From contig OZ199838.1 in assembly GCA_964304625.1 (NCBI GenBank), positions 11,818,324 through 11,882,323 of the forward strand: a stretch of DNA of 64,000 bases. Reading direction: 5' to 3'. The DNA comes from Kudoa neothunni (Eukaryota; Animalia; Cnidaria). The notes below the pieces were generated by a model. It made no database searches, was not told where the DNA came from, and saw nothing but the letters and a program-made list of their open reading frames with translations. Both the position numbers and the translations under genes were made by a program. Positions 36,358 to 64,000 of this stretch are shown here, in pieces; positions within the stretch are counted from its first letter, which is position 1; every line of letters starts with the position of its first letter.

Positions 36358-38681
36358 TTATTTGCTGCTTTTGATTGATAGCACCGTTATCACTATTATG
36401 ATAGCCAAGATAAACAGACTAGCTAGGACCCTATAACAACGTTATCTACCACCATGATTAATAACAGACTATTTACATCCACCAGTTGTCTTCGATCCAT
36501 GTTCTAAATTGATAATTAAATATACGATATTATATTTAACGTAACACTTACGATTTTGCGGGAGCTAAAAATATAATATTAATAAACAATAGAATAAGAA
36601 TGTTTAATGGTATTCCAAACATAAACAGAAAATTAATCGGCAACATGTCATTAAATTTATTGTTTGGAAAATTATAATGAGAGTAATTTAGAAAAGTTAC
36701 AAGTGAGAAAAAATTTGGTTGGAAGACTGTAGAATTGAGCTTCAGCCACCACTGTATATGAAGTTGATTCACTCAACCCATAAATAAACAAGTATGATCC
36801 ACAGGAATACGAACAATCTTCTTTGCTCTCACAGCGCGCAACAATCAGATCAGCCTTGGTCCTGGGATCGGTTTTGTAAATTTTGAAATTGCACACCGTA
36901 GAAATTTCGGAATGTTGCAGATTGAATGCTAGACGTAGTTTTGTGCCATCGATCCACAGCGAGGAACTTTTTAAGGTTTCATATTGAGACACTTAATTTT
37001 TTGTTATTTAGAATTTGAAATGAGTTTATGGATAAATATGTTAATAGATAATTACATGTAGTTGCAGCTATGTCGATGCTACTGGGTGCGTAATAATTCA
37101 ATGGCTCTAGTACAATCGTGTATTTGGTTTTTGGAGTCAAAACTCCCATAAAAAATCCGTTAGAACAGAGATTAACACAAGGAAAACCAAATGAACATTG
37201 AATATTATCTAGAAACGCTTCAGTGCCTGTTTTCTTGACTTTAAGTTGACATAATGCATCCTTTATTTGAGAGTCAACTTTTATATTCAATTGTGCATAT
37301 TGTTTGGATGGATGTATCGTATAGTCAAGTTTTGGTAGTCCCACTAAGGTTAGATGTCGATTAATTATAACGAAACTAATTAATCACCTGTTTCGAATGA
37401 TGTATATGAAAACTGGTTTTCGGTGTGTTCAACTTCAACTATGTACTTGGTTTTTGGTAGAAGATTTTCCAGTTTTAAGTCAACACAGGTGTTGGTGCAT
37501 TTTTGCTTACCATCTTTTCCGCAAATTCTCTTTCGCCCGCTCTTCGGGTAGCCAAAATGATAGAGAGTTACTTCACATCGAGTATTATCATCCACCTTCA
37601 ACGATGACATATTCAATGTAACGGAACTTTGAGTTATTGCCGTAACCTCAATGATATTCTTATCAGCTTTATTCAGATTAATGATTTAGAATTACTAATT
37701 TCAATTACAGTTTAGTTCTACTATGTAGGGATCCTTATCATGGCGTGTGTTTATTGATACTGTGAAAATACCATTTGCTGGACTTATTTTCATCTTGACG
37801 TGTGTACATGGTCTGAAACATTTGTTCGGAGTTGAAGTTGAATTAATAAAGCAATCTTCAACATAGTTAGAGGTAGATTTCCCTCCTTGTTTTATTTTAA
37901 ATTGACATATATCGTCAGGTTTAGGATCGTGAAAATGAATAACTAGACTATCTGTTACACCGGAAGTTTTATTTAGAGAAATGGCAAATTTTCTAGGTCC
38001 TTCTGGAATCATCAACTCCGTGTTGGCGTAGTCGAAGAATACGTTCGCCTCAGACGTTCCACAGAATAACTCTAGGGGAAAATTCGACGGTCGTCTATAC
38101 GTAGCCGATAGCTCGTAGTATCTCCCACAGTTAACATTAGCAGGAATACTATCCAAAACTATATGTTTATGTCTGATTTGGCATGTTGTTGAAAACTGGC
38201 AATTTTTCTTCACTTTAAAGTAGACATTGTCTTCTATCAATTTGGGAACCACATTTGGTGGCTTGGGAAAGTCTATTTTATAATATTAAACTCTTATAGA
38301 AACAGAATTATATTACTGTTTTCTACATAAATATAATGTGTTGACTTTTTTGATTTAATTGACATGTAGTATGATGTTTGAGCTTTGTTAGTTTTAACCG
38401 ATACTTCATCACGACAATCCACCGTACAAAATGGTAAAATTCCACATCGTACGTCTTCATATTGAGCTACGTTATCGGTTACACTAAGTAACTTTATCGT
38501 GCATGATGTTTTTGCCGTCCCTCTCAATCTCAAGTAAATTGTGTCACTCCCAGCAATTCGTTCTACCATATACTGATGCAGACAAACTAAGAATAAGGTA
38601 GCTAAACTACGATTTAATTCAGTTATATGTACCTTGTTTGACACAAAACAATGACCATATCAACCACAACCATAGCTCCAT
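36358..38681 (-). CDS. Gene A1: type I membrane protein with Cys-rich and three 4-Cys FN3-like domains
   Basis: Signal exon MELWLWLIWSLFCVKQ. FN3-like LENLLPKTKYIVEVE, LTPKTKYTIVLE and GLSESTSYTVVAE. 13-nt microexon 36552-36564, then a 27-nt exon (TWIEDNWW) and TM exon VLASLFILAIIIVITVLSIKSSK*. Confidence 0.8.
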
Positions 38682-38759
38682 CGTATTTTTTATTTAATAT
38701 AAAGGGATAAAAATTCAAAGGTCTAGGATTAGATTAATACAGACTAAAGATCCTATAGA

Positions 38760-41700
38760 TTGTAAATTTCCGGATCAATATTTACGAAGAAGTATTATAT
38801 CCATTTATTGTCGAATGATTATTTCATCGAATTCATGAAACGGTATATAATACAATTGATTGTCGGTTAGTTGGACATGAGATCTAATTTTTGGATAGCA
38901 TGCAAATAATGTTTATTTTTATGTTAACTAACATTTATGTATTTAATCGAATATAACTGAAATATCATTGAACAGAATCAAAGCTTTTTTTACTTTTTTT
39001 TCTGCGAATAAAGATATATAGGGATATTTTAATATTGATTGAATATACACCGTAAATAAATATTTTTTACATTTTAAATAATATTGAATGATAATCAATA
39101 TAAATATAACGATAAACGTGACCTGCATTTTTTATATAATTATAAGTTATTAGGCAAATAAAAATTTATTTTATATAGGCTTAGATAAAACGTGATAAAT
39201 AAATCTGAATAAAATTTAATAATAAATAATAATTATCATTTCATTGAAAGTAAAATAATTATTTCGTTCAGTAGAAAGAGGAAAGCCGCTTAGTCACCAG
39301 CTCTAGTTGCTACAAAAGCCACTCCTCCAATAACCACAGCCAAAGCACCCAACACTGCGAGGATGCTAAATAAAAGAATTATGAAATTTTTAACCATATT
39401 TCACATCAAAATTACATCCACCAGTTCTTCTTCATCCAACCACTATATATAAAAAATAAATAGTTAAAATTCGTAATTTATATAATAATTATTATTACCC
39501 AGTCCCTTGTTCTATACAAAATTATATAACAATATATAGATAACCTAATAATTTACTTCCAACTTCAATCTCTTCAATAAGTGCTGCAGATTGTCCATCG
39601 TCAGATAACAACTGATAACTGTAATTTATATCTATATCCTCAAATACAACGGAGCTTGCACAATCAATATCTTGATCAGTTGGTTTTCCTATCTTCTCAA
39701 ATAAGAATTTATCCTCGGGATCTTTGGGATTGACGGCGTAGATAACCACATTACATAAATTCCCTGACTGAGTTTTGTCTGGTATGATGGTTAATCTCCT
39801 TTCGTAACCATCAAAAATGATGTCTGGTTTTACTTTATCATTATTTTTTCCTAAAAATAACGTTATAACGTTTTCAAATCAAGATTTAATCACTTAGCAG
39901 TCGCGACACTTGATAAACTGTGTAATCAATGTGACCAGCATGAACCAACTCGATATTTATGGTTACATTCACTGGCAAATCCACCACTTCGAATCTGTGA
40001 GAACATAAACCCCAACATGGTTTTCCATCAGAACAGGTGGCTATTGTTTTTTTAAATCTTCTGGATCTCTTGTATCTCACGTAACATGTCATTTTTGGAA
40101 GATACGACTCATATTCACTCCCTGCTCCTGGGATCATGAGCATTGTATCACCGAAAAAGAATGTTTGTGTCTCGCTGAATTGTATTGTTTCTAATCATAC
40201 TAAGTATTTATAATATAATATATGTATACTTGTGGCGAAAAACGAATTAACAGCATATTCAGCACTATTTTTTTCTGCTCCAATTTTCATCTCAAGAATG
40301 TATGCTGTGTTGGGAGTCAAAAGCTTTAGCGGTGTCTTATTGTCACATGCTTCAGGGCAAGCTTCATTTCTCTCTTCCCCACATATCGCAGTCATTGGTA
40401 GACCGGGAAGTTTCGCGTGTACCAATGATGGAAAACACTTAGGTGAATTCTCAAGGTTTGATACTTGAAAACTAGCTGAGGTTGCTGTGATATCAGATAT
40501 AGCAACAGTATTTTTTGTATCTATAAAATTCTGTAATTTATTATTTCGTTAAGGTTATACCTTTAACTTTATATTCTGCATATCCACGTCTAGTTCCAAT
40601 TTTGACTGTATAATGATCTGCAGCAGCATTTTGATTAGCCAAGTTTAAAGTAGTAGCTCCACCACAGTACTTGAAACATTTATCACTTTCGCCATTTCCA
40701 GCCTGACTACATTTTTCCGCGTATGTGCTAACACTATTACTCTTTATTTGGAAATTGCAGATCTCATTGTTCAAATATGGATTATGCATTTGTAATGAGA
40801 AATCTGTGTGTGGAGAGGTGGATTGAGAAGAAGTAAAAGGAACATATTGGTATTTGTTATCTTTATTGTAGAAAGACTTGTTAGCGTAAAACATGACTTT
40901 AGCTTGATTAGCCCCACAGTAAGAATAATAGGCATTGGACATTGAGTATCGAATTGGTATAGTAATGTTATGTAGATTACAGCTGTTATTTTCTACTTTA
41001 GCCAAAGTTCTATCATGTTTTGTACTTTTAACTCGGCATTTATAGTTGTCAGTGCAGAAATTGTTAACTCCGAATTGCGCTTCTTCTTCACTCAATGTTA
41101 CATTAGTTTCAGGAAGTCTGGGCATATCTATTGAAAAATGAGCTGAAAATTATAAGTATTATTGCTGTTTACCTGCCGGAATCGCTAATATATTTATTTT
41201 TCTTCCTTCAACAATTCTGAAATAGTGCATCAACCGTCCACTATTGACATTAATCACAACTATCTGATTACATTTCGTTTCGCACACAGGTAGAATATTT
41301 GCTTCAGTGGTTGCTCCAGATATTTTGCATATTGTCTCATTAAATTTTGCTCTAACTCCATTTCTAAATAAATGGTCTATTTTACAATCTTCGTTTTCGT
41401 CTCCTTTCAGATAAATTGTAATTTCGTCCATGTATGTTGAGATTTCTTGATCAACTATAGGTATATCGTCTGGATTTATTGTAGTTTCGGGAGGAGGGGT
41501 AGTGGTAATAGTTTCGGTAGCATCAATCGAGATGTCATTATCAGTTGGCGCGGAATCTTCATTTTCAGAATCATCGTCAGCTCCAGAATCATCTCCATTT
41601 TCAGAATCAACTTCAGTTTGAGAATTATCACCAGTTCTAGTACTATCTTCAATAACAGGATTAACATCACCAGAGTCACTTTCAGCATCAGGACTATCGG

Positions 41701-42055
41701 ATTTCATAAATATCGGATGAATATTCGACATTAAAAGCCGGCTACTTTGAGCAGCAGTAACATCGGTATTGGGAGCTTCTTCTGCTGCTGGTTTTTCCAC
41801 TACTGATGGAGGTGGTGGTGGTGGGCGTTTAATTTGTTGAACGAAATATTTGTGACAACGTGCTAAATATGAATAACAGAATTAAAAAATGACAGAAAAG
41901 CAATATATTACTAGTTGTGAGAGCTGTTAAAAATAAAAACAATATTGACAGCCTCATTTTATTAATTCTTCGTTATTAATCATTCATCGGAGTTATTGAA
42001 GTCACTAAAATTACGTCGCCAATAAACGATAATAGTCTATAAGAATTAGTTAATT
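38760..42055. repeat. Tandem segmental duplication unit (B gene plus B-A intergenic region), repeated at 48366-51755 and partly at 61860-64000
   Basis: Direct comparison shows long identical and near-identical tracts, including introns and flanks. Confidence 0.95.
39290..41957 (-). CDS. Gene B1: type I membrane protein with acidic/mucin-like N-terminus, Cys-rich and 4-Cys FN3-like domains
   Basis: Signal exon MRLSILFLFLTALTT; D/E/S/T-rich region; ICGEERNEACPEACD..LLTPNTAYILEM; 13-nt microexon 39499-39511; GWMKKNWW; TM IILAVLGALAVVIGGVAFVATRAGD*. Confidence 0.82.
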
Positions 42056-42101
42056 AATACTCAGTATATGCTTCCGAAGATGCTTTCTTACTTTTTTTAA
42101 T

Positions 42102-45100
42102 GGCAGTGTCTATTTTGCCGGACGCGCTTTTTCTCTTAAAATAATAATTCAATCGCTACAATTTTTTCCAAAAAATATCTTTTATAAATGCAGAATATAA
42201 ATTTAGTTTCATTTATCTTTTAATTAATAATTAGGTATCAAAATACATCGAGGATATTTTAAACTCATTCATAAGTATCATTATAAATGACATTAAATTT
42301 TTTATAAATCTGTATTATTTACATAATTAATTTAATTTTATGTGTAACAGAATCATAAACGAGTAAAATACCCTCTAGCGTGCGGTTGTAACTTTGATAG
42401 TCGCGAGTAGAATCACTATGGAAGGAGAGTCTGATCAAACACTACTAATTCAGGATATTACATCAGGCCCTAAGGTCGGAAATGCATTTACAAACTTTGA
42501 AAAGGCTAAAAAAATCATGGATAAGTACTCAAAGCGGAACAACCTTTGTTACTGGGTCCGAGACTCTAGAAAAATCTCAACTGCCCTAAAAAAATTTGAT
42601 AGAGACATGAACTCTGATCTTGTTTATTATGAAGCCACTTTTTGTTGTGTTCATGGTGGTAAAAATGTAATTATCTATATAAAAATTGATGTAATTAATT
42701 TGAATTCAGATACAATCTAAAAGTTCTGGAAAGAGAAAAATCAACAGCCATAAAAGTGGTTGCAATTTCTTCATTACACTGCGAGTTCCTAAAAACATGA
42801 ATATGTTAGTTATTAGAAAATTGGATCATACTCACAGCTGCAACAGAAATGAGCATTTTAGGAATTTTTTACCAATGAATAGAAAATTAGATGAAGAAAG
42901 CAAGAATCTTATAAAAAATGTTCATTTTTATGATGGAAATTTAAAAAGAGTACAAGTAGAAATCATGAACCAATCACAAAAAAAGGTTTCGTTGAAGCAA
43001 ATCCATAATTATATTCAAACACTAAAAAAATGTTTCGTTGGATATTTCGGAATTGTTTAATTCAATAAAAAAATTCTTACCCAAATGCAACTATCGAAAT
43101 ATTGCACAATAACTCCAATGAAATGACTGGAATATTTTTCCAAGACCTTTATATGAAAAATGTTATTAAAAAATTCCCCGAATTAGTATTTATGGATGCT
43201 ACTTATAAATTAATCAATAATCGTATCCCATTGTATATAAGTCTGTTTATCGATTCTTTTGAGCAAAGCCAAATAGGAGCTATTGCTCTTTTATCTGAGG
43301 AGAGTACCGTGACTGTTACCTGGTTATGTCAATCTCTACTTAAACATAACGAGGAAATGTCAACCAAAACAGTTTGTTTCATTACGGATAAAGACATAAT
43401 TGAAAGAAACTCTATGAGATCTGTATTTCCTAACGTAAGTACAAACTTATGCCTGTACCGTGTCTTAAGAACATTTGGTAGAGAAATCTCTACTTTAAGA
43501 ATGAGAATAAACAAAGCTGAAAGAAAAGCTGCCTTAGAGTTGATTCAAAAGCTTTGTTATACCGATGATCCAAAAATTTATGAAAATTACCATGAATTGT
43601 TAAATAAGACATGTAACAAAAAATCATTAGTTATTATAATAAATCTTGGGATCCAATCAAATATGAATGGTGCCCGGCATACATGAACCTAAAGGGTACT
43701 TTTTAAATGAAACCAATAATCGATTAGAATGCATAAATTCCAAAGTTAAACAAATCTTAAAAAAATTATCAACAATTGAAGTCTTTTTCAGCGATCTACT
43801 TATTTATTTATCAAGTATGAGGACTGAGCGTGAGAGTAAAGCAGTTAAAGAGTTTACAACCCAAAATGTTGAGAAATTAAATTCGGACATTAACGGACGA
43901 TATAAAACATTGTTACCTTCATATGCGTATAATATTATGCAGAATGAAATAAATAATTATATCGAACCCTATACCAATCCTGATCCCAATAGTTGTACAT
44001 GTTATTTCTACGTAAGTATGGAGTTGCCATGTAGGCATATTATTTACGCTAGAAAAATAATGAACATGAATTTATATGACGAGAAAATTTGTAATAAGAG
44101 GTGGCACAAAGAATATTACCTGTCATTTATTCAAATGACCAAAAATTTATATCTTCAAAATCCTTCGTGTTGTGTGCAACCAAGTATTACAGAAATTTAG
44201 AGTCAGTGACCTGTTCCGAATTCTGCTTTTAAGCGATACAGGGAGCTAGAAATTCTTTGTAAGAAAATAGCTTCGCTAGGGTCTGAAAAAACAGGGAGTC
44301 AATATGATTCATTAAAAAAGATTTTAGGTGAATTAATCTCTCTTATTTCCAATGGGGATTCTCTGGATAAGGTGACTATTTTTTCCACTATTCATATATC
44401 AACTTAATTTAGTTCAAGTTAATGTCTGAATCTGTCATCATAAACAATCAAGAGATTTCAATCCCAACATGTAATTAATGATATTGTCTTTAGTAGAATT
44501 TTTATTTCGTGTTTAGTTACTGAGGAATCACGATTAGAGAATGAGGATATACTAGAAGCAGTTAATGATAATGCTCCATCATCAATAATTGATATGGAGA
44601 TCCCGAATATTGTAGATGATACCACAACTAAAAATCCATCTTTGAAGGGTGTGTATCTTTTGTCCATTTTGCTAAATTCATAAAATTATAGGAATTAAGC
44701 TGCCAACAGTAGTGAAATTGAGAGGTAGACCAAAAGGTGTATTTCAAACAGTTATTGGTTTAAGAAAAAAAAGAAAATTATAATTATGATAATAATAAAC
44801 ACCAGTATCGATATATAGTATTCAAATATAGTTTTACGTGGATGTTAAACAGTCCCAATTATTTGGCGTTGCATTACAAGATAATTTCAAACATTTATTA
44901 TTTAAAAGCAGTATACTCAACATTTTATTAAATTTTAGTAGTGTATCAATCATCTGTTAAAAACATTTACCTAATTATAAAAATTTTAAATACGAATTGG
45001 CCAAATAGTTTTACTTTACTGTATTTTCATTTGGATATTATGGATACAAATTAGCTATGTTAAAATTCGTCACTGAATTAATGAAACTAAATTTATATTC

Positions 45101-45191
45101 TGCATTTATAAAAGATATTTTTTGGAAAAAATTGTAGCGATTGAATTATTATTTTAAGAGAAAAAGCGCGTCCGGCAAAATAGACACTGCC
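42102..45191 (+). mobile_element. Mutator-like (MULE) DNA transposon with ~110-bp TIRs and 9-bp TSD
   Basis: TIR GGCAGTGTCTATTTTGCCGGACGCGCTTTTTCTC... at 42102, inverted and ending at 45191. TSD TTTTTTAAT at 42093-42101 and 45192-45200. Confidence 0.93.
42418..44783 (+). pseudogene. MULE/SWIM (ZSWIM1/3-like) transposase, intron-containing, with frameshifts
   Basis: FMDATYK, FITDKD, TNNRLECIN (DDE); SWIM zinc finger CTCYFYVSMELPCRH; AT-hook RGRPK. Frame breaks near 43030-43100 and 43620. Confidence 0.8.
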
Positions 45192-45986
45192 TTTTTTAAT
45201 TTTAAATTGGCATATATCATCAAGGTTAGGATCGTGAAAATGAATAACTAGACTATTAGGTTTATCGGAAGTTTTATGAAGGGAAATGGCAAATTTCCTA
45301 GGTCCTTCTGGAATCATCAACTCCGTGTTGGCGTAGTCGAAGAATACGTTTGCCTCAGACGTTCCACAATATAACTCTAGGAGAAAATTTGACGGTCGTC
45401 GATATGTAGCCGATAACTCGTAGTATCTCCCACAGTTAACATTAGCAGGAATACTATCCAAAACTATATGTTTATGTCTGATTTGGCATGTTGTTGAAAA
45501 CTGACAGTTTTTCTTCACTTTAAAGTAGACATTGTCTTCTATCAATTTGGGAACCACATTTGGTGGCTTGGGAAAGTCTATTTTATAATATTAAACTCTT
45601 ATAGAAACAGAATTATATTACTGTTTTCTACATAAATATAATGTGTTGACTTTTTTGATTTAATTAACATGTAGTATGATGTTTGAGCTTTGTTAGTTTT
45701 AACCAATACTTAATCACGACAATCCACCGTACAAAATGGTAAAATTCCACATCGTACGTCTTCATATTGAGCTACGTTATCGGTTACACTAAGCAACTTT
45801 ATTGTGCATGACGTTTTTGCCGTCCCTCTCAATCTCAAGTAAATTGTGTCACTCCCAGCAATTCGTTCTACCATATACTGATGCAGACAAACTAAGAATA
45901 AGGTAGCTAAACTACGATTTAATTCAGTTATATGTACCTTGTTTGACACAAAACAATGACCATATCAACCACAACCATAGCTCCAT
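45192..45986 (-). pseudogene. Gene A2: 5' part of a duplicate of A1, disrupted
   Basis: Near-identical to A1 37905-38681. In-frame stop at 45710-45712 (GAA in A1). Interrupted by the MULE; ~40 nt continue on the far side (42060-42101) and the rest of the gene is missing. Confidence 0.85.
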
Positions 45987-46067
45987 CGTATTTTTTTTAT
46001 TTAATATAAAGGGATAAAAATTCAAAAGCCTAGGATTAGATTAATACAGACTAAAGATCCTATAGAT

Positions 46068-48357
46068 CAGTGGCTCTTAACCTGGGTTCGATGAAAAAAT
46101 TCCTAATATTAGATCACATTTAGGATTAATATTCTTTATAATTTTAATATTTTAAATAAACCTTCTATTGGTTGTCTTTATAATCCTGATTAGGAGCTCA
46201 ATTAAAAAGATAATAATGATCACTTAAAAAATTATGGATAATTTAGCTAAAATTATTATTTGAGCATTTGAAATTCTTTTCGATTTATCTGATTAGTACA
46301 ATCACGTGTAACTGGTTACAGAGTTTACTTCGCGTCAGTGTTATTTACTTGCTAATTTTGTGAGGGTTACTGGAAATAAACATTGGCACTTTGAATGTTT
46401 AACCAAAAAAGAAAGTGATCAATTGATTTTGTACAGTTCGGTTTTACCTATGTAACGGAACTTAATTGTATTCAACGACCTCTTTGCATGATATGCAACT
46501 CGAAGTTAAGTAATTCTAGTTTGGTACCGGCGAAACTAAAAGAGCATTTTACAATTGTCCATGGAGACTCTGCATATAGGAATATGACTCTTTCCGAACT
46601 TGGAGCAAAGAGAGTAAGATATGACGTAAGATCTACTTTGCAAAATTTTTGATTTGTTAATATCGATAAGCCTATCTTAACAGTAACATATGAAGTTTCA
46701 TATCGCATTGGAAAACAAGGTGAACCTCACAATATTAGTGAAACGCTCGTTAAAGCTGTCGCGTTGAAGATGGCAAATATTTTATTGGGAAGTATTGCAG
46801 AAAAAAAATTAGCACAAATTCCTTTGTCAAATGATACCGTTAAGAAAAGAATTGATGATATGATTAAAGATATTTTGGATCAATTATTTTCTGATCTAAT
46901 TTCATGTAAAGCAAAGTTTAGTATACAATTTGAAGAAACTGCTGATATATCAAACCTAAGTCAACTGGTTTCGTTTGTTAGATATTTGAAAAATGGTGTT
47001 ATTGTTGAATATTTTCTTTTTTGCAAACCTTTAACAACAACTGCCAAGGCAGTGGATGTTAAGAAAGTTGTCGATGAGTTTTTCAAAGACAATGGGCTTT
47101 CATGGAATATGGTTTCTTCTTTTTGCACTGATAGTGCCCAAGCTATGCTGGAGCGTAACTCTGGTTTTTGTGCTCTTGTGAAAGCAGATGCACCTCATAT
47201 TATTGTTATGCATTGCATTTTACATTGATATGCATTAGCAACAAAGAATATGTCTCCAAGGTTGGCAGAAGTGTTGAAAATCGTGATAGATTGTGTAAAT
47301 TTTGTGAGACGTAATGCTTTGAACCATCGAATTTTTAAATATTGCTGCAAAGAAATGGATTCTGAGTTTGAATTACTTTTGTTTTATTAAAATGTGAGGT
47401 GGCTGTCTCGAGGGAAGTATTAAACCGCGTTTTCACTCTGCGAAAGGAAATGGGTATATTTTTGCTGGAATGTAACCATTGCCATGCACAATGTTTCAAT
47501 AATTTGGAATTTAATCTTCTTTTGGTATACATGGCTGATATTTTTGATTCCATAAACTGTTTGAACCTGCAGATGAAAGTAAATGGAGTCAAAATCATTG
47601 AGGCAGAGATGCATCTTAGTGCATTCCAAATAAAATAATCTTTATACAAACGAAGAATAATGGTCGACAATTATGCAAACTTTCCACGTTTAGACGATAT
47701 TTGTAATATTAATGGCGACGGTAACAACGAATTGATCATTTTACCTTTTGCATTAAGGGAAATAATTACTGCAAATTTAAAAGAACTTTCTAACTCACTC
47801 GATGGCTATTTCCCTTCTAAAAATTCATTCCCCGGCTGGGTGAGGCAGCCATTTAGCTGAGGATGCCAATAATAAATATCTTGATGAGCTAATCGAACTT
47901 CAACACAACACAATTCAAAAACAACTTTTCGAAAAAGTTTCACCATCAATCTTTTGGATAAATCAAATTGAGAAATATCCTGCAATTTCGATGAAAGCAT
48001 GGAAGTTTTTATTCCTTTCGTAATAACTTATCTTTGCGAACAATCATTTTCAAGATTGGTCACCATGAAAACTAAATTAAGAAATAAGCTTTTCTGTGAA
48101 AACGATATGCGAATTGCTCTCTCCAGCATTTTGCCTCGTATTGTGGATTTGGTTGCAAAAAAACAAGAACAAAAATCGCACTAATTGGATTTATATTAAT
48201 TTTATTTATACGTTTTGCAATTTTTATGATGTGCAAAATAATGATTAAATTGTAATTCATTTTATTTAAAATTTAAAAAATTTTATGTTTGAGGTTCGAC
48301 GAGGCGTGCTATAGGGTAATAGTGGTTCGGCGACTCTCAAAATGTTGAGAACCACTG
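46068..48357 (+). mobile_element. hAT (Buster/SPIN/ZBED8-like) transposon with decayed transposase
   Basis: TIRs CAGTGGCTCTTAAC / GTTGAGAACCACTG; 8-bp TSD CTATAGAT (46060-46067, 48358-48365). The empty site is seen in the paralogous region at ~38753. Motifs IPLSNDTVKKRIDDM, FCTDSAQAML, HCILH, TYLCEQSFS; multiple stops. Confidence 0.95.
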
Positions 48358-48953: not shown

Positions 48954-51651
48954 TTAGTCACCAGCTCTAGTTGCTACAAAAGCCACTCCTCCAATAACCA
49001 CAGCCAAAGCACCCAACACTGCGAGGATGCTAAATAAAAGAATTATGAAATTTTTAACCATATTTCACATCAAAATTACATCCACCAGTTCTTCTTCATC
49101 CAACCACTATATATAAAAAATAAATAGTTAAAATTCGTAATTTATATAATAATTATTATTACCCAGTCCCTTGTTCTATACAAAATTATATAACAATATA
49201 TAGATAACCTAATAACTTACTTCCAACTTCAATCTCTTCAATAAGTGCTGCAGATTGTCCATCGTCAGATAACAACTGATAACTGTAATTTATATCTATA
49301 TCCTCAAATACAACGGAGCTTGCACAATCAATATCTTGATCAGTTGGTTTTCCTATCTTCTCAAATAAGAATTTATCCTCGGGATCTTTGGGATTGACGG
49401 CGTAGATAACCACATTACATAAATTCCCTGACTGAGTTTTGTCTGGTATGATGGTTAATCTCCTTTCGTAACCATCAAAAATGATGTCTGGTTTTACTTT
49501 ATCATTATTTTTTCCTAAAAATAACGTTATAACGTTTTCAAATCAAGATTTAATCACTTAGCAGTCGCGACACTTGATAAACTGTGTAATCAATGTGACC
49601 AGCATGAACCAACTCGATATTTATGGTTACATTCACTGGCAAATCCACCACTTCGAATCTGTGAGAACATAAACCCCAACATGGTTTTCCATCAGAACAG
49701 GTGGCTATTGTTTTTTTAAATCTTCTGGATCTCTTGTATCTCACGTAACATGTCATTTTTGGAAGATACGACTCATATTCACTCCCTGCTCCTGGGATCA
49801 TGAGCATTGTATCACCGAAAAAGAATGTTTGTGTCTCGCTGAATTGTATTGTTTCTAATCATACTAAGTATTTATAATATAATATATGTATACTTGTGGC
49901 GAAAAACGAATTAACAGCATATTCAGCACTATTTTTTTCTGCTCCAATTTTCATCTCAAGAATGTATGCTGTGTTGGGAGTCAAAAGCTTTAGCGGTGTC
50001 TTATTGTCACATGCTTCAGGGCAAGCTTCATTTCTCTCTTCCCCACATATCGCAGTCATTGGTAAACCAGGTAGATTCGCGTGTACCAATGATGGAAAAC
50101 ACTTTGGTGTATTCTCAAGGTTTGATACTTGAAAACTAGCTGAGGTTGTTGTGATGTCAGATAACGTAACAGTATTTTTTGTATCTATAAAATATCGTAA
50201 TTTATAATTTAGTTAAGCTTATACCTTTAATTTTATATTCTGCATATCCATGTCTAGTTCCAATTTTGACGGTATAATCAGCATTAAGAGCACTATCTTG
50301 CCCATCCACGACCAATGTGGTGGCTCCACCACAGTACTTGAAACATTTGTCATTGACAGTACTTCCAGTCTGACTACATTTATCCTTAAAATCATTGCCA
50401 GTATCTTTAATTTTGAAATTGCATATCTCATTGTTCAAATATGGATTATGCATTTGTAATGAGAAATCTGTGTGTGGAGAGGTGGATTGAGAAGAAGTAA
50501 AAGGAACATATTGGTATTTGTTATCTTTATTGTAGAAAGACTTGTTAGCGTAAAACATGACTTTAGCTTGATTAGCCCCACAGTAAGAATAATAGGCATT
50601 GGACATTGAGTATCGAATTGGTATAGTAATGTTATGTAGATTACAGCTGTTATTTTCTACTTTAGCCAAAGTTCTATCATGTTTTGTACTTTTAACTCGG
50701 CATTTATAGTTGTCAGTGCAGAAATTGTTAACTCCGAATTGCGCCTCTTCTTCACTTAATGTTACATTAGTTTCCGGAAGTCTTGGCATATCTATTAAAG
50801 AATAAGCTTAAAATTATAGGTAATACTATTATTTACCTGCTGGAATCGCTAATATATTAATTTTTCTTCCTTCGACAATTCTGAAATAGTGCATCAATCG
50901 CCCACTATTGACATTAATCACAACTATCTGATTACATTTCGTTTCGCACACAGGTAGAATGTTTGCTTCAGTGGTTGCTCCAGATATTTTGCATATTGTC
51001 TCATTAAATTTTGCTCTAACTCCATTTCTAAATAAATGGTCTATTTTACAATCTTCATTTTCGTCTCCTTTCAGATAAATTGTAACTTCGTCCATGTATG
51101 TTGAGATTTCTTGATCAACTATAGGTATATCGTCTGGATTTATTGTAGTTTCGGGAGGAGGGGTAGTGGTAATAGTTTCGGTAGCATCAATCGAGATGTC
51201 ACTATCAGTTGAAATGTCACTATCAGTTGAATTGTCACCCTCAGTTTCAGAATCATCTTTAATTTCTGGATTATCTTCAACCTCAGGATTGTCATCAGCA
51301 CTAGCATCTCCATCAGCCTTAGGAGTACCTTCAACGCTAGATTCAACTTCGGTTCTAGAATCACCTCCAGCACTAGAACTACTATCATCATTAGAAGTAA
51401 TGGATTTCATAAATATCAAGGGAACATGTGACATTGAACTCTGGCTGTCTTTAGTAGCATCAGCAGCGGGTTGGGAGTCTCCTGCTGGATTTTCTACTGC
51501 TAATACTGGTGGTGGAGGGCGTAGAATTTGTTGAATGAAGTATTTGTGACAACATGCTAAATATGAATAAGAGAATTAAAATATGACAAAAAGTTAAATA
51601 GTTACTAGTTGTGAGAGCTGTTAAAAATACAAACAATATTGACAGCCTCAT
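48954..51651 (-). CDS. Gene B2: paralog of B1
   Basis: Same exon structure as B1. The 3' exons are essentially identical; the N-terminal acidic region and third Cys domain diverge. ORFs are intact. Confidence 0.82.
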
Positions 51652-51897
51652 TTAATTAATTCTTCGTTATTAATCCTTCATCGGAGTCATTGAAATCAAT
51701 AAAATTACATCGTCAATAAAGGATAATAATGTCTAAAAATAAAAGTTAATCAATCCTAGTACCATGGGTGGTCAAAAATTAATTGGTGCAATTAATTGAT
51801 TGCAATAAAATCTCCAATTATAATTTAAAATTAAATTTTTCAAATTTATGATTCCGTTTTGCATTTATCTATCGCAGCGTTGTGTTTTTGTATGTTG

Positions 51898-54599: not shown

Positions 54600-55000
54600 A
54601 AAATAGCACGATAATAAAAAGGTCTAAATGACCAGTTCCATTTTTGTATTTTTTCTTGAAAAATAGAATAGGAAACCCACCAAAAAATATTCGTCTAATG
54701 TAACACTGCAATTTTTCTTCGAACACAACCAGTGTGCTTCAGCCACTGGATCATGGAATTATTATAGTTTTAAAATGATGCACAAAAGAAATCTAATTAC
54801 GTCATTTATGCATCAGATCGAATTTCAAAATTGTGGCTACATTACAACTAATGTCATAGATGTTATTTATTTGACAATCAAATTATGAGAATATACTAAT
54901 ACGAAAACCATAGTTAACTGCTTTAGGAAATCAATTTTCCTCTCTGAAAATCAACTAGATGATGATTCCTATGATGTTCCTGACGATAATCAATTAAATA
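54600..55000 (+). mobile_element. Tigger/pogo (Tc1-mariner DDE_1) transposase fragment
   Basis: NTTSVLQPLDHGII at ~54722-54765 and TIVNCFRK at ~54907; degenerate. Confidence 0.7.
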
Positions 55001-55376
55001 TGGCATAATTGAGCTAATTGAAGGGGAAAAATCACTAGAATTAACAAATCCTATTGAAGAAACTCTTGAAGCAGCACAGTCGACGCCCCTGATATTTTGA
55101 CAACACCAGATTTCCTTGACTTCAACAGGAATGATGACGACTCTGATTATACTGATAAAGTTATTATATCAAACCAAGAGTAACCATATTAATTTGCAAA
55201 AGTTAGAACACTCTTTCTAAATAAAATTTTGTCAATGCTTTATAATATAAACCGAACTTAAACTGGCTGACTCAGTATTTAAACAATTTTTTCAGAACAA
55301 AAAATATAGAACCACATTTTAATAACAAAAGGTATACAAGTTATTTTTTGCTTAAAATTAAATTATTATTAATTAA

Positions 55377-57564
55377 CCCATTCAGGTTTTCAATATTAAA
55401 AAATTATAAGAATTAAAATTATTATATATTATTAATAGAAAATTATTAATTTGAATATAAAATTAAACTGAGATAATAGGTTAAAAAAATATTGCGATTT
55501 TATGAATGTATCATTTTCGATACATAAAACCCCCGAGAACGTGCATGCGCAAAAAATATAACTCAATTAATTAATATTATATAAGAATAATTGTTTTAAT
55601 TATATTATTACGACATTATATTGAAAATTATTAGTCAACTGTGAAATAGGGCGATGCATTTTGTATGGAGTCTGGTGGAGCACCCTTTACAAAAATATAC
55701 GGTGATTTTATGGCATATGGCGCATCTCAGTCTTTTTCCAGATTTATCAGTTGTTATTAGGGGCTTTGGGCACATATTAGATTTAATAATTTGAGATAAT
55801 TTGGATTTTTTCTTGTTAGGTACATCATATGAGGGTTTTATCAAATTTGACACGATTGCTCTGGTGTGCTCTAAAAGATCAATAGGTTTGTCTGTTAAGG
55901 AATTATAAATTTTCCAGGAGTTAACAACACACATGGATATCAGGTTTGTGAAAATTGGCCGATACCATTTTTTTCATCTTATAGAAATTCTATAATTGGC
56001 AATACCATTATCGGCCAAATCAACACCACCCATGTTTTTGTTGTATTTATGTATCATTTGAGGCTGGTCCATAATTATATTTTTGTTATCCTTTTTGGAG
56101 TATTTTTTTATGGATACTAATGGATAACATGTGTAGTGGTTGTTCATTACAATAACCGGCTTCGTGTCATTCCATTGGGAACAATAAATTTGATGAGAAT
56201 CTTCATATTGTTCGAAATATCCTCTTTTATTTTTGGAAAAAACATTAGAGCAAAAAAGAGGACACTTCCCAGTTCGATTCGGTCTTACTGTGCCAGTAGC
56301 CGCCTCATTCATTTCCTTCAACAACTTTAGTAATTTGTAGGATGTAAAGAAGTTATCAATATAAAGATCCACTTCATTTAAATCATCAATATCCTTTAGA
56401 AAATTTAAAACCACATTCTCACCGAGACAAAATTGGTTATTTGCTCTTTCTTTACCGCAATAAATTTTGAAGCTGTATATATGACCAGACTTGCTGGCCA
56501 TAATCCATAACTTGAATCCGAACCTTACTGGTTTGCCTTTTATAAACATTTTTGCCGAGTGCATACCAAAATAAGGCACCATTTGTTCATCAATTGATAA
56601 TGTTTTATCAAAAATCCCGAACTTTTTAAAATTAGCATTCAATTTATCGATTAACGGCCTTAATTTAGCTATTTTATCGCTTACATCGATTGAGTTGTTA
56701 TCAGCAAAGTGTACATAACTTTTAATTTCTTTAAAACGTTTTAAAGTCATGGCTTTTTTAACTAATTGGACGCCAGAGTTTTCGGCAGTTTCCCAATACA
56801 TTTTCTGTCTTGGTAAGTTATGATAACCAGATAATATAAGTATGCCTATGAAATTTTTCATTTCATCAACAGATACGTGAAAGTCATGATCACTCCTCTG
56901 GCGAGAGTAAATATTTGTCTGCTTAACTATTTTCAATACAAGATTGTCATCAAATAATTGCTTATATATTTCATATGAATCTAAATTTTGTTAAAATAAC
57001 AGATTTAATTAAAAAAATCTTTTCATTAAATTCTGTTTCTCCCGGGCCCCCTAAAGTAGTAAATATTTCAACATGACTCGCAATATCATGGATATCATTG
57101 TCTCTGATGATGTTATCGCAAATTTCGTCTAAATTTTCGATTGCATCAGGTAATTTTAAATACTCAGTGACGTTCATTTTGAGAGTTTACCGAAAACACG
57201 TGGGTTTTATGTATCGAAAATGATACACGCGGTAAAGTATATTATTTCCGCAATCAGTTTAGGTATGATGTTTAAATTGAATATAATGTAAAATTAATTC
57301 AAAAGATAATATATGTTAGCAGTTGTAGTTTCTTCTAGCGCAATAGAAACATTTTTTCGTTCTAATGCTCATACTTAGGCGGACGGAAAAAAAAAAGAAT
57401 CAATAAAACTTCCAAATAAATAATTTTACATTTATATCGTTATATTATAAACAATTTTTATTTTTTACTTAAACTAAAATGGAAAAAAGCGGATATATTA
57501 TTTATATATAGATATACAATCGAAATACTGGTGTATCATTTTCGATACATAAAACCCGAATGAG
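55377..57564 (-). mobile_element. Full-length piggyBac element with nearly intact PGBD2/3-like transposase
   Basis: TTAA at 55373-55376 and 57565-57568; imperfect TIR CCCATTCAGGTTTT / AAAACCCGAATGAG; subterminal repeat TGTATCATTTTCGATACATAAAACCC three times. ORF motifs SIDEQM, GKPVRFG, DNFFTS, MGGVD and a C-terminal Cys-rich domain. One in-frame TGA at 55974-55976. Confidence 0.93.
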
Positions 57565-57603
57565 TTAAACACAGTTATTTTCCCCAACGCATGCGTTATT
57601 CGA

Positions 57604-58820
57604 ATGTGTCCAGTGCTAAAATGGATGCAACGCAGTGGTTTTCGTCTTCCCTATTTCTGCGTCACATCCATACATTACTGTATCTATCAAATGTTGCGAT
57701 TTTATGCTAAAGATACAAGAACTGAACGTAAGAAAAAGTCAAATGATAATTTCGAGGCGATCCGAAACGTTTTTCAAACTTTCAATAATAATAGTCTGAA
57801 AAATTTTTGGTCAGGACCCTACGTCACTGTGGATGAAAGGTTGGTGAAATTTAGAGAAAAACGCCCCTTCCAGGTATGTATGAGGTCTAAGCCAGGTCTT
57901 TGTGGCATCAAATTATGGGTGGCCGCAGATGCCGAAACATCATATCTTCTAAACATACAGCCTTATACGGGAAAGGTTGGCGGATTAAGAGGGATGAACC
58001 AAGGTGCAAGGGTAGTAAAAGACCTTATTTCACCTTTTTACGGCACATGTCGAAGAGTTACAGTCGACAACTTCTTTACGTCTATTCCACGCGCCTAGGA
58101 ACCACTTTCAAATAAACTAACTTTGACTAGAACTATCCGATCCAACAAACGCGAGATTCCTAAAGAATTCCTCAAAAATTCTAGGCGTGAGGTTTGCTCG
58201 TCAATTTTCGGCTTTCATGGAGACCTCACTTTGGTCTCATATGCCCCAAACAAAATTACACTGTGAACCTTCTCTCAACCGAACATAACGATTGTTTGAT
58301 TGAAAATGAGAAGAGAAAACGATTTAGTGTAATTATTCATTGCAATAAAACAAAATGACTGTGCTTTATTCCTGTTCAAAACCAACACGCAAATGGCCAA
58401 TGAAAATTTGTATGGATCTGCTAGACATTGCAGGTTTAAACTCTTATATCTTATTTACCAAAAAATATCACAAATGTCAAAAAAATAATAAAAGCAGGAG
58501 ACAATACTTTATTAGAGAGCTATCCATTGATTTGGCCAGAGAAAATGTTTCTCGACGCTAAACAAATTCTGAAAGATTACCAATCTACATAAAGTATGGT
58601 TTTGGTATTTTTGATGATAATAATAACGATAATAATAATAATAATAAATCAATAAAATCGAATTTACCACAGTTACCAAATAGAAAAAGATGTTCCTTGT
58701 GCCCAAGAAATGTCGACAAGAAAACAATGCTAATGTGCTTCAATTGTCGAAAATTCGTGTGTGCAAAACACAGAGCCCAAAAAAATATTATTGTATGTAC
58801 CGGATGCAGCAAATAGTTTC
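57604..58820 (+). mobile_element. Degenerate piggyBac (PGBD4-like) transposase
   Basis: VTVDERLVKFRE..F.V.M.SKPG..GIKLW; VTVDNFFTS; RKWPM; Cys-rich RCSLCPRNVDKKTMLMCFNCRKFVCAKH. A possible right terminus ...CCGTGCAGGGAAGG|TTAA lies at 61425. Confidence 0.85.
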
Positions 58821-59199
58821 TTTTTAAACAGTGATTATATAGATCTTACTCGATGTAACTATTTAAGCGCCATTTATGATACGCTGATTTTATTGCATCT
58901 TTGGTTCTGCATTACTTTTGAAACGAAAAACTATAATTCTGTGGGAAAAATTAAAATATCTAACGTCTAGTATTAAATCTTGTTTCAAAAAAAGGAAAAT
59001 TTTATTATTTATGCAATTCTGTTACGTAAGGATTATTTTTTTAACTGTTTGGTGTAATACTTTGTGGTATAATTATTTTGCTTTTTCTATATGCTAAAAA
59101 TAAAATCGTTAATTGACATCCAACATTCAAACAAAGGATAAAAACATTCGGAGAAAACGAAGAATGCAGCTAAAATATGTGGTATAGTTAAAAATTTGT

Positions 59200-60953
59200 G
59201 TTAAAGTTTAGTTCCTCCCCTTCGGCGTCCGCCGGTTAACCGTCATAGATAATAATCAGGGTTCACGCTGTTTACACTTTCCGGAGTATGTTTCCTGAAG
59301 TCTTCACTTACAAAAATTTAGATAACCTAAATTTTGAAGACCTATGTTACTTCGAGGATCATCCTGAAGATTTAATTATTTTTTTCCAGCAACTTGATTT
59401 GCTACCAACATCAATGGTTTGTTCTTGTTAAGGTCGAATGATACTTTCTCCAAGGAACAATACTGTTGATGGCTACAGTTTTCTGCTGTTGTTTCAAGTC
59501 ATGCAAGAAGGAATTTTCGTTACGAAAGAACACGTTTTTTCCACCTAGCCCAACTTTCTCTGTATCAAATTTTAAAGATTTTATATTTTTGGGGCGTGGG
59601 AGCGACGGAACAATCTTTCTTAATGAAAGAATGCTGTATTAATTCTTCCGCCATTATTGTGGCTTGGAAAAATTTTATACGTGACATTTGTTTGAGTAAC
59701 TTCATTTGTGACCCAAACAAAGTGGTGGTCCTGGCGTACAAGTCCAAATAGACGAAAGTCGAATCTGTAAGAGGAAGTTTGGGATTGGTAGAATCCTAAA
59801 AAATCAATGTTTATGGATAGTTGGTGGATGAGGATGGAAGAGTCTCTATTGTGGAAACCGAAAAGAGAGACACTCCCACTCCCGAAAATATTATTACCAC
59901 TCATGTTAAAAGGGGATCTGTTATACATACAGATGGATGGCCTGCCTATAGTTCATTCGTTGAACTAGGTTATGAATACGGTCATGAGACAGTAATTCAT
60001 GATAGGGAGTTTGTCTCGTCTACAGGAATCCACAACAATCGAATTGAAGGACTGTGGAGCGCGTTTAATTGAAAATATCGCTTCCTATATTGCCGAATGG
60101 ATATTTAGAAGACTCCACAGGAAGCGTGTTCTTTCTAAACTTTTAGAAGCAATTAAACATACTTATATTTGTGGATTTTATTTTATTGTAAAAATTTATA
60201 TAATCATGTCTTTTTCCAATCGTCAATGGATAAATATCTATAGTGAATTACGGCATTGTTAGGTTTCATTTTAATTAGTGTTGAGTGTTAACCTATTATT
60301 TTTTATAATGATTGTATACATATTTATCAAATAAATTAAAATTTTTGTATAAAATAACAAAATCTTCCGAAAATTAAGTTAACAGACAGATTATTTTATA
60401 TTAACTTAGGCTCATTAGGGTACAATTAAATAGAAATGGCATATGTGATTTTTATCCATCTAAAAACTATTAAAAATTACATTAAGATACAAATATCATG
60501 AGTCGATATATTGTTTTAGTTTATAAATTAAAAAAAAGGACAAAATATAAAAAATATTTACTATGTATCTTTAAAATGTAATCTTATTTTAGGTTTGATA
60601 CCGTTATCTATCATTTGTTTTAAAAAATAACAAATAAAATCCATAATTAAATCAATGATATCTATAACACCATAAAAAATATTCGTTTATATATAATTCT
60701 CAAGTTTAATGATAAAAACATATATTAACTTATTTCATATTATTTTGTTGTGCACGTAAATTGACATCTTATTTTATAATTTATAACATTTATAATAATA
60801 AATATTATACTTTTCTCATTGATATATTTTGTTTAATTACATCTAACTGAAGTAAACTGGATTTTACTGGGTTTATATTTTATGGAACGTGACCCGATTA
60901 TAACCGATGGCGGGTAACCGGGGGACGCCAAAGGGGGAACAGAACTTTAACCC
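59200..60953 (+). mobile_element. Merlin (IS1595/ISXO2-like) DNA transposon, decayed
   Basis: GPGVQVQIDES, GSVIHTDGWPAY, GIHNNRIEGLWS. Imperfect ~45-bp GC-rich TIRs at 59200-59245 and 60906-60953; candidate 8-bp TSD AAATTTGT (59192-59199, 60954-60961). Confidence 0.85.
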
Positions 60954-61949
60954 AAATTTGTATATTTTTATGAATTTATCAGTGAAACGCTTAGTAGTAA
61001 GGTTAATTAGAAAATCTCGAATTTGAGTTACGTAATCTCCGTTAACCGAAAATAAATGAATGTTTTGCATGCCGTGGTGATATTGCGAGTTTCGGCGATA
61101 AATTAATTATCCATTATTCAGTAGTAACATATTATATTTAATTTAAATGTTATATGTTCCTTTTAATGTTTAATTTGTTTTAATTTTAATGCACATAACT
61201 TTGCTTGGTTGCATGATGCCTTAACTCATAAATATTTGCATTTTCTAACCCATATGTGCTAAAAGCTTTCTTAAATGATTCACTCCTGAATTTATCAATG
61301 TTTCAAATATCATAAAATTTATGTTTTAACTAATGAAAAATTGATTAAGGTAAGTTTCTACTTGGATCACTCAGTAACCCCACCGCGGACAGGGCGTGAT
61401 TTTTTCTGAGTCCGTGCAGGGAAGGTTAATAATAAATTTTATAACTAGGATTAATTTTGAACGCGAAATTTTAAAAGAACTGGAAGTCCTATTTAAGTTA
61501 CTTAATGACTTTGTTTAGTAAATAAATGAACTTTAATCGTTAATTAAGTTGCTCATCAAATTAAGGAAATTGTATTTTTGGTAAATAATTTTAAAATAAA
61601 CTTAGAAATACTCATTAATTTCTCTCAATACCTCTATTTATATTTGAATGGAAAGCGCGTGAATAATTTGGTGTATCAAAATCACTACACTGAAAAAATA
61701 ATGTCAAGTTATAAAATGCAACAATTAAATAGAAAAATACAATTTACAGGGTTTAACACGCTAATTAGATTAACTCTTACGTAGAATTTCTTCATTCAAA
61801 ATATAACTAAAAGTAAAAATTTTCCATCACATAGTACAAGAAAAAACTGGGCATTATCACTAATTAGAATAAAATTTAATTTTAAATAGTATCTATCATT
61901 TCATAAGAAGTAGTATAATTATTTTGTCTAGTACAAAGATGAATGACGT

Positions 61950-64000
61950 TTAGTCACTGGCTCTAGTTGCTACAAAAGCCACCCCTCCAATAACCACAGC
62001 CAAAGCACCCAACACTGCGAGAATACTAAAAAAAGAATTATGAACTTTTTTACTATATTTCACATCAAATTACATCCACCAATTCTTCTTCATCCAACCA
62101 CTATATATAAAAAATAAACAATTATAATTAATAATTTATATAATAATTATTGTTACCCAGTTCCTTGTTCTATACAAAATTATATAACAATAAATAGATA
62201 ACCTAATAATTTACTTCCAACTTCAATCTCTTCAATAAGTGCTGCAGATTGTCCATCGCCAGATAACAACTGATAACTGTAATTTTATATCTATATCCTC
62301 AAATACAACGGAGCTTGCACAATCAATATCTTGATCAGTTGGTTTTCCTATTTTCTCAAATAAGAATTTATCCTCGGGATCTTTGGATTGACGGCGTAGA
62401 TAACCACATTACATAAATTCCCTGGCTGAGTTTTGTCTGGTATGATGGTTAATCTCCTTTCATAACCATCAAAAATGATGTCTGGTTTTACTTTATCATT
62501 ATTTTTTCCTAAAAATAAAGTTACAATGCTTTCAAATCAAGATTTAATCACTTAGCAGTCGCGAAACTTGATAAACTGTGTAATCAATGTGGCCAGCATG
62601 AACCAACTCGATATTTATGGTTACATTCACTGGCAAATCCACCACTTCGAATCTGTGAGAACATAAACCCCAACATGGTTTTCCATCAGAACAGGTGGCT
62701 ATTGTTTTTTTAAATCTCTGGATCTCTTGTATCTCACGTAACATGTCATTTTGGAAGATACGACTCATATTCACTTCCTGTTCCTGGGATCATGAGCATT
62801 GTATCACCGAAAAAGAATGTTTGTGTCTCGCTGAATTGTATTGTTTCTAATCATACTAAGTATTTATAATATAATATATGTATACTTGTGGCGAAAATGT
62901 ATTAACAGCGTAGTCAGCACTACTTTTTTGAGTGCCAATTTTCACCTCAAGAATGTATGCTGTGTTGGGAGTCAAAAGCTTTAGCGGTGTCTTATTGTCA
63001 CATGTTTCAGGGCAATTTTCATTTCTCTCTTCCCCACATATCGCAGTCATTGGTAGACGGGAAGTTTCGCGTGTACCAATGATGGAAAACACTTAGGTGA
63101 ATTCTCAAGGTTTGATACTTGATAACTTGCTGAGGTTGTTGTGATATCAGATATAGCAACAGTATTTTTTGTATCTATAAAATATCGTAATTTATAATTT
63201 AGTTAAGCTTATACCTTTAATTTTATATTCTGCATATCCATGTCTAGTTCCAATTTTGACGGTATAATCAGCATTAAGAGCACTATCTTGCCCATCCACG
63301 ACCAATGTGGTGGCTCCACCACAGTACTTGAAACATTTGTCATTGACAGTACTTCCAGTCTGACTACATTTATCCTTATAATCACTGCTCACTTTTATTT
63401 GAAAATTGCAGATCTCATTGTTCAAATATGGATTATGCATTTGTAATGAGAAATCTGTGCGTGAGAGGTGGATTGAGAAGAAGTAAAAGGAACATATTGG
63501 TATTTGTTATCTTTATTGTAGAAAGACTTGTTAGCGTAAAACATGACTTTAGCTTGATTAGCCCCCACAGTAAGAATAATAGGCATTGGACATTGAGTAT
63601 CGAATTGGTATAGTAATGTTATGTAGATTACAGCTGTTATTTTCTACTTTAGCCAAAGTTCTATCATGTTTTGTACTTTTAACTCGGCATTTATAGTTGT
63701 CAGTGCAGAAATTGTTAACTCCGAATTGCGCCTCTTCTTCACTTAATGTTACATTAGTTTCCGGAAGTCTTGGCATATCTATTAAAGAATAAGCTTAAAA
63801 TTATAGGTAATACTATTATTTACCTGCTGGAATCGCTAATATATTAATTTTTCTTCCTTCAACAATTCTGAAATAGTGCATCAACCGTCCACTATTGACA
63901 TTAATCACAACTATCTGATTACATTTCGTTTCGCACACAGGTAGAATGTTTGCTTCAGTGGTTGCTCCAGATATTTTGCATATTGTCTCATTAAATTTTG
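61950..64000 (-). CDS. Gene B3: third B paralog, 5' end beyond the window; apparent frameshifts all in homopolymer runs
   Basis: Collinear with B1/B2 including the microexon and TM exon (..VATRASD*). Single-base indels near 62284, 62385, 62716, 62750, 62897, 63057 and 63562. Confidence 0.72.

Follow-up and report, generated by a model that had tools for sequence, protein, structure and literature searches.

Gene models of the array and of a distant paralogue

The stretch of DNA considered here (the window, 64,000 nucleotides) corresponds to C1:11,818,324-11,882,323 in an assembly of Kudoa neothunni totalling 40,260,978 bp in four contigs, and contains a tandem array of minus-strand genes for predicted type I membrane proteins built from cysteine-containing modules. 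In transcription order the array reads B3, a nest of transposable elements (TEs), B2, A2, B1, and A1, and a distant paralogue, gene C, is located at 7671-10567. This order had been put forward in an earlier note made from the nucleotide sequence alone, and it was borne out. The same note had guessed at a probable myxozoan as the source of the DNA, which is right; K. neothunni is a myxozoan parasite of tuna muscle. The window is eukaryotic DNA with a low GC content of approximately 31%. The K. neothunni genome was recovered from yellowfin tuna HiFi reads, among Kudoa genomes obtained from contaminated fish data, and the published assembly (40.2 Mb; N50 12.0 Mb) includes three chromosome-scale scaffolds and an 18,219-bp mitochondrial contig, with an annotation of 5,316 predicted proteins and a median intron of 49 bp (PMC12239612).

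Gene models were built from minus-strand stop-to-stop frames and an enumeration of frame-keeping GT-AG introns, the 3' ends being read base by base. Gene A1 (36358-39128, minus strand) has nine exons totalling 1878 nt and encoding 625 aa. These are a candidate signal-peptide exon (39128-39071), the exons for modules D1 (38601-38317), D2 plus D3 (38272-37709), D4 (37666-37388), D5 (37343-37056) and D6 (36991-36701), a 13-nt micro-exon (36564-36552), a 27-nt exon encoding TWIEDNWW (36503-36477), and the transmembrane (TM) exon (36430-36358). In A1 every exon is open and every intron is GT-AG; the module exons are in phase 1-1, and the summed exon length is a multiple of three. The first exon of A, which would encode MQVTFIVIFILIIIQYYLK, is a candidate only and requires an intron of approximately 470 nt; the other candidate start is a closer ATG, at 38657, for which a 26-nt intron would be needed.

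Gene B1 (39290-41957, minus strand) likewise has nine exons (2301 nt, 766 aa): a signal-peptide exon (41957-41912), an exon for an acidic low-complexity region and D1 (41862-41173), the exons for D2 plus D3 (41127-40561), D4 (40520-40230), D5 (40190-39894) and D6 (39850-39557), a micro-exon (39511-39499), a 27-nt exon encoding GWMKKNWW (39442-39416), and the TM exon (39365-39290). The B1 introns are 39-56 nt long, in line with the published K. neothunni median of 49 nt (PMC12239612). Gene B2 (48954-51651, minus strand; nine exons, 2331 nt, 776 aa) has the layout of B1, from which its exons were mapped by alignment; every exon is open, with GT-AG at each splice site. A copy of the candidate signal-peptide exon of A is found just downstream of B2, at approximately 48790-48733.

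Gene C (7671-10567, minus strand) shares 28-37% identity with the modules of A1 and is the best match in its own genome to the A1 exons. Its order is a signal-peptide exon (10567-10516), D1, D2 plus D3, D4 and D5 fused in one exon, D6 with a long linker, an Asp-rich stalk, the TM segment, and a tail of 17 aa. Most of the model was rebuilt, with the small exon or exons ahead of the TM exon not pinned down, and the gene appears intact.

Several features unite these models. Most of the A, B and C introns are 39-64 nt in size with GTAA, GTAT or GTGA donors; longer introns are found in A1 (approximately 135 nt), in C (181 nt), and after the candidate first exon of A. Module exons are in phase 1-1 throughout. 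Both A and B have the micro-exon and the 27-nt exon before the TM exon, in the same phases, and in both the 27-nt exon encodes a Trp-rich juxtamembrane sequence, W(I/M)(E/K)(D/K)NWW. An acidic, Pro/Ser/Thr-rich disordered N-terminal stretch of approximately 150 aa is peculiar to B. The C-termini read ...ILAVLGALAVVIGGVAFVATRAGD in B1 and B2 and ...VLASLFILAIIIVITVLSIKSSK in A1, so that the tails would be TRAGD in B and KSSK in A (4-5 aa). Read from the exon models, a predicted signal peptide, a single C-terminal TM helix and a short tail are all present, and they support a predicted type I topology with a minimal tail. The earlier note had attributed a signal-peptide exon to all of the genes, and a single TM helix with a tail of about 5 aa to every A and B gene. 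The former is true of B1, B2 and C, the exon of A being a candidate; the latter is true of A1, B1 and B2, and fails for A2, which has no TM segment. Likewise, of the five array genes A1, B1 and B2 are intact, and A2 and B3 are not intact as assembled.

Module architecture and fold

Each of A1, B1, B2 and C contains six cysteine-containing beta-sandwich modules. It had been suggested that three N-terminal Cys-rich domains precede a series of FN3-like modules. This division is not right, because D1 and D3-D6 have a common signature, C-x17-19-C-x5-10-C-x3-C, and D2, which is of another type, is the only exception. The motifs quoted in support of FN3-like modules are all present, namely ICGEDGKQSCDTQC..LKPNTRY in C, ICGKDGKQKCTNTC..LLPKTKY in A, and ICGEERNEACPEAC..LTPNTAY in B, but the insert before the L-x-P-x-T-x-Y strand contains three cysteines rather than four, the fourth being located upstream of it. 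The four-cysteine modules presumably hold two disulfides each. Typical FN3 domains are usually without disulfides.

In all of the searches and fold predictions reported here single exons were used as queries, exon by exon. When 23 D4-type modules from throughout the genome were aligned, C37, L41, L75, T79 and Y81 were invariant, and P47, C55, C63, C67 and P77 were nearly so. The AlphaFold2 model of D4 (37383-37685), based on the same 23-module alignment, has a predicted local distance difference test score (pLDDT) of 83 and a predicted TM-score (pTM) of 0.75. A Foldseek search with this model returned 12 matches at E values of 0.001 or less, almost all of them FN3 domains (sDscam, tenascin, fibronectin) with TM-scores of 0.6-0.7. 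When the D4-type module profile was compared with PDB sequences, it matched the FN3 domains of fibronectin (E value 7.8e-6) and Tie2 (E value 3.6e-5). The matched region spans profile positions 4-81, and in it the LxPxTxY motif is in register. These results support the assignment of an FN3 fold to the modelled D4-type module; the FN3-like modules of the earlier note are thereby confirmed by fold and by PDB profile matches, though they fall below Pfam thresholds. A structural search with D3 also retrieved FN3 domains (Z approximately 7, 80 residues aligned), and in a profile-profile comparison of D3 with D4 the cysteines were in register (E value 0.029, low probability). Across 21 paralogues, the D2-D3 exon (187 aa) has ten invariant cysteines.

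The nature of D2 (A1 38272-37990 and equivalents) is less clear. Its AlphaFold2 model gave generic Ig/FN3-like sandwich matches only (Z approximately 7). Many weak in-register matches link D2 with the CUB repeats of cubilin-like proteins from starfish (Patiria, Acanthaster, Asterias); they centre on a C...L.CG...P motif and, with approximately 25 CUB repeats per starfish protein, add up to an E value of 1e-35. Against a single starfish CUB repeat the best score was 10.6 bits (hmmsearch), and in a profile-profile comparison the E value with one P0002 segment was 1.6e-5. Beyond this weak motif, the assignment of D2 as a CUB domain gained no support from hhalign, Pfam, PDB profile and wide structural searches: CUB was found neither in the Pfam scan, nor among the PDB sequence matches, nor in the top 50 structural matches. 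An ESM Atlas feature search with exon 3 of B1 was uninformative, the best score being 0.79, to phage hypothetical proteins.

Size and distribution of the family

The earlier note had inferred a lineage-expanded family, and the searches agree. Within its own genome, the D4 module of A1 matches 36 places and the D2-D3 exon, used as a single sequence, 127. A profile search with the D2-D3 exon returned at least 149 exon matches at E values of 1e-5 or less, a lower bound, given that 150 of 360 candidates were scored. Most of the matches are open frames of approximately 200 aa; they occur on all three chromosomes and are often clustered, with approximately 21 at 7.96-8.20 Mb of C2, approximately 12 at 0.07-0.33 Mb of C3, and 7 at 16.85-17.11 Mb of C1, near the chromosome end.

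Relatives elsewhere are few. A word-index search of 5.8 billion proteins gave one relative, and an exhaustive hidden Markov model (HMM) search of 1.84 billion representatives gave 18 hits, of which 13 were exon-sized fragments. The remaining five were four starfish cubilin-like proteins and one JGI protein, all matching through many weak repeats. No annotated cnidarian or myxozoan protein was matched among the 1.84 billion representatives. Seven of the fragments were traced to three public datasets, an ENA metagenome contig and the Logan runs SRR31175926 and SRR33849685, whose contigs are genomic and have the exon layout of the K. neothunni family. The ENA contig is 64% identical to exon 3 of B1, with conservation of the intron position. 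The SNF5 exon of SRR31175926 is 44% identical to that of K. neothunni. No description of the family was found in the searchable literature. On sequence evidence, the results support the view that the family is strongly expanded and probably restricted to the Kudoa lineage.

Incomplete copies and evolution of the array

A2 (45190-46067, minus strand) is a 5' fragment of an A gene that covers D1 and, from the D2-D3 exon, the initial 130 aa. It is 95.9% identical to positions 37885-38760 of A1, the sole part of A1 that it matches; the later modules and the TM segment are absent, and its frame stays open up to and into the inverted repeat of a MULE transposon. Because only the 5' part of A1 is matched, the A-type D4 module occurs once in the genome, and the A2 frame ends in the MULE inverted repeat, A2 is taken to be a by-product of the tandem duplication of a 4.2-kb unit consisting of the 5' part of A together with B. 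The MULE DNA transposon itself (42103-45191, plus strand; ZSWIM/MULE/SWIM open reading frames) shows a 9-bp target-site duplication, TTTTTTAAT, and its terminal inverted repeats, approximately 100 nt long, are 99% identical. The element lies between the upstream DNA of B1 and the truncated A2, within approximately 10 bp of the breakpoint of the duplication that made A2 and B2. The array grew by segmental duplication of the 4.2-kb unit, and transposons have invaded it since.

B3 (61950-64000, minus strand) is a B-type copy with approximately ten single-base indels in exons 3-6, relative to B1, B2 and B4, most of them at homopolymer runs. Indels occur even in near-identical stretches, with 3 substitutions and 2 indels relative to B2 and 5 substitutions and 3 indels relative to B4. 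Directly past the end of the window, a run of 200 N at window-equivalent positions 64001-64200 (L042:325-524, where L042 is the adjoining stretch) cuts exon 2 of B3 and removes its 5' end, and because B3 abuts this gap its homopolymer indels are suspect as assembly errors. One intronic indel (at B1 position 39371) was also found in a contig of a sequencing run; the exonic indels are not listed there. B3 is either a young pseudogene or a poorly assembled copy at a contig end. Beyond the gap lies a fourth B copy, B4 (L042:4043-6726, minus strand), the module exons of which are all open. Its juxtamembrane exon is 31 nt long in place of 27 and contains an in-frame TAG (GWMKKN*), and as assembled its product would be without a TM helix; B4 may represent either a secreted form or a pseudogene.

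Sliding-window identities among B1-B4 form a mosaic in which the grouping of the copies shifts along the gene. B1 and B2 are 100% identical over 40315-39216 (approximately 1.1 kb), B2 and B3 are 100% identical where B1 is only 70% identical, B1, B2 and B3 agree in a stretch in which B4 is 76% identical, and B3 agrees with B4 in the 3' third. Such a mosaic is what repeated gene conversion or unequal exchange leaves behind; through conversion, the copies continue to replace each other's sequence.

The ratio of nonsynonymous to synonymous substitution rates (dN/dS) was estimated by the Nei-Gojobori method among B1, B2 and B4. It was 0-0.24 in D1 and D2, which are under purifying selection, 0.42-0.48 in D3, where dS is high, and 0.24-0.45 in D4, while D5 and D6 have 0-5 substitutions, too few for a usable ratio. 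The acidic, disordered N-terminal region had values of 1.0-1.65. Diversifying selection on the folded modules is not shown, because the ratios there are 0-0.48. The divergent patch in D3 has a high dS as well, and so it resembles an older stretch that escaped conversion more than one under selection.

Transposons and neighbouring sequences

The TE nest proposed in the earlier note is real: in addition to the MULE, a hAT-like, two piggyBac and an IS1595-like transposase were found. A remnant of the hAT-like (DUF4371) transposase (46764-47228, plus strand) lies inside a 2.3-kb insertion between A2 and B2. The nest proper (55638-60072) has three members: a piggyBac transposase on the minus strand (55638-56990) and, both on the plus strand, a second piggyBac fragment (57604-58098) and an IS1595/ISXO2-like transposase fragment (59821-60072).

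C is not contiguous with the A/B array, because ordinary genes separate it from A1. One of these encodes a Kelch-repeat protein (19733-20722, plus strand; Pfam E value 2e-26). Another (25868-27875, plus strand) resembles, by eye only, a fatty-acid transport or acyl-CoA synthetase-type gene; a Pfam scan of one piece of it (27288-27875) gave no match. Two further short open reading frames, at 4915-5394 (minus strand) and 155-445 (plus strand), were noted; one begins much like a signal peptide (MIWAWGLVLLLLSGIYS), and one is cysteine-rich. Just past the array, a long open frame rich in Ser, Pro and Tyr, in which degenerate repeats resemble YSPTSPS (L042:8941-9999, minus strand), may encode the C-terminal domain of the largest subunit of RNA polymerase II.

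Proposed role of the proteins

We propose that the locus is a tandem array of genes for type I membrane proteins specific to the Kudoa lineage, that the array was made by duplication and conversion, and that the encoded proteins are outward stalks with a passive binding, adhesion or coat role; we would give this reading a probability of roughly 60%. The proteins are probably exposed on the parasite surface. They would sit in the parasite plasma membrane with a rigid, disulfide-stabilised stalk directed outward, and would act there as passive binding, adhesion or coat molecules. Autonomous signalling would not be expected, because the tail is too short.

A number of observations weigh against this proposal. 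Kudoa plasmodia live within muscle fibres, where a ligand for an outward-facing coat is hard to see. In a Pfam search with ten exons none reached threshold, and no exon could be placed in the FN3 clan on that basis; the best scores, all below threshold, were to DUF5581 (Fn3-like; E value 0.061) and Fn3_Dep-1_4th (E value 0.066). The two-module model of D2-D3 is weak (pLDDT 64), and signal peptides and TM helices were judged from the sequence rather than by a dedicated predictor. In the assembly, neither A2 nor B3 nor the adjoining B4 is intact. In the sequencing runs that include the locus, it is present as colinear DNA contigs in which no splice joints occur; none of the runs recorded as RNA includes it, and a single RNA run that was examined gave nothing. 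Very few host transcriptome reads have been reported to map to K. neothunni (PMC12239612).

The alternative that survives best, which we regard as unlikely, is that the proteins serve self-adhesion or a structural purpose among the cells of the parasite itself, acting at the junctions of valvogenic, capsulogenic and sporoplasm cells or in the architecture of the spore surface, and do not face the host. Myxozoan spores consist of several tightly joined cells, and a type I layout in which an FN3 stalk is combined with a minimal tail typifies adhesion molecules; both points would suit such a role. However, a purely structural role would not obviously require 150 or more divergent paralogues.

The mosaic structure of the B genes raises the question of a variable coat. 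It is conceivable, if doubtful, that this cnidarian parasite has evolved a conversion-driven variable coat from disulfide-braced FN3 modules, analogous to the VSG, var and VSP systems, and that the array is a donor or an expression locus. Programmed antigenic variation in the strict sense, with one or a few members expressed at a time and conversion making new variants that evade fish antibodies, seems slightly more doubtful again. The family is large, it is arranged in tandem arrays of which some are near chromosome ends, and conversion mosaics are evident; most of the variation falls within D3 and the acidic N-terminal region, the latter with a dN/dS of 1.0-1.65. Moreover, variant surface families have been proposed in the myxozoan Sphaerospora molnari (bioRxiv 10.64898/2026.02.11.705288). 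Opposed to this are the high dS of the divergent D3 patch and the low dN/dS of the folded modules among B1, B2 and B4, on which diversifying selection is not shown. Nothing like an expression site was noticed, nor was there a sign of switching between copies, and Kudoa grows in myofibres, largely hidden from antibody.

A role as ligand-binding receptor subunits that signal via a separate partner chain, in the manner of the FN3 pairs of cytokine receptors, would be surprising. The D2-D3 model does retrieve tandem FN3 ectodomains of cytokine receptors (EPOR, IL-21R, GHR), but with TM-scores of approximately 0.3 and from a model of low confidence (pLDDT 64); the WSXWS motif is absent from the translations of the module exons, the tails are 4-5 aa long, and the modules accordingly do not resemble a class I cytokine-receptor homology module. 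Equally improbable is the view that most of the array consists of DNA that has lost its function and is decaying in a region rich in transposons, which would fit the truncated A2, the broken frame of B3, the stop before the TM exon of B4 and the five TE families, but conflicts with the fully open models of A1, B1, B2 and C (626-777 codons, splice sites intact) and with the purifying selection on D1 and D2.

The published gene prediction for K. neothunni, with approximately 5,300 genes, leaned on protein hints from other species (PMC12239612), and an annotation of this kind may miss lineage-restricted families. Membrane proteins numbering 150 or more would then amount to a few percent of the gene set, and the family would be an obvious place to look for host-contact molecules, diagnostics or vaccine targets in parasites that spoil commercial fish. 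It is likewise a natural source of an FN3 scaffold in which four cysteines are conserved and probably form disulfides, and the array shows clearly how gene conversion has shaped tandem gene copies in an animal with a small genome. To the family the array contributes the B subfamily, with six modules and an acidic N-terminal extension, and the nearly unique A type; it does not establish a new principle.

Comparison with known systems

Among known systems, the CUB domains of starfish cubilin-like proteins have in common with D2 a weak likeness of motif, in register, that is without a Pfam, PDB-sequence or structural CUB match.

The VSPs of Giardia and the VSP- and RIFIN/STEVOR-like genes proposed in S. 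molnari are similar to the Kudoa family in that they are large families of cysteine-containing type I proteins with a very short tail, show recombination between copies, and belong to parasites. In contrast, the Kudoa fold is FN3-like and does not consist of CXXC repeats, and exclusive expression or diversifying selection is without support here. Furthermore, the Kudoa proteins do not have the conserved C-terminal motif that is listed for VSPs (bioRxiv 10.64898/2026.02.11.705288), and no sequence similarity to variant surface protein families was found in the word-index and HMM protein searches.

The FN3-repeat ectodomains of animal proteins, such as fibronectin, tenascin, sDscam FNIII, Tie2 FN3, contactin and RPTP delta, share with the Kudoa family the beta-sandwich fold, the LxPxTxY motif of strand F, module exons in phase 1-1, and a single-pass type I topology. 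Unlike them, the Kudoa modules have four conserved cysteines, one upstream and three in the insert, and score below the Pfam FN3 threshold. In comparison with animal FN3 receptors, the Kudoa proteins contain no immunoglobulin, kinase or phosphatase parts, their tails in A and B are 4-5 aa long, and they are present in at least 149 copies in a 40-Mb genome.

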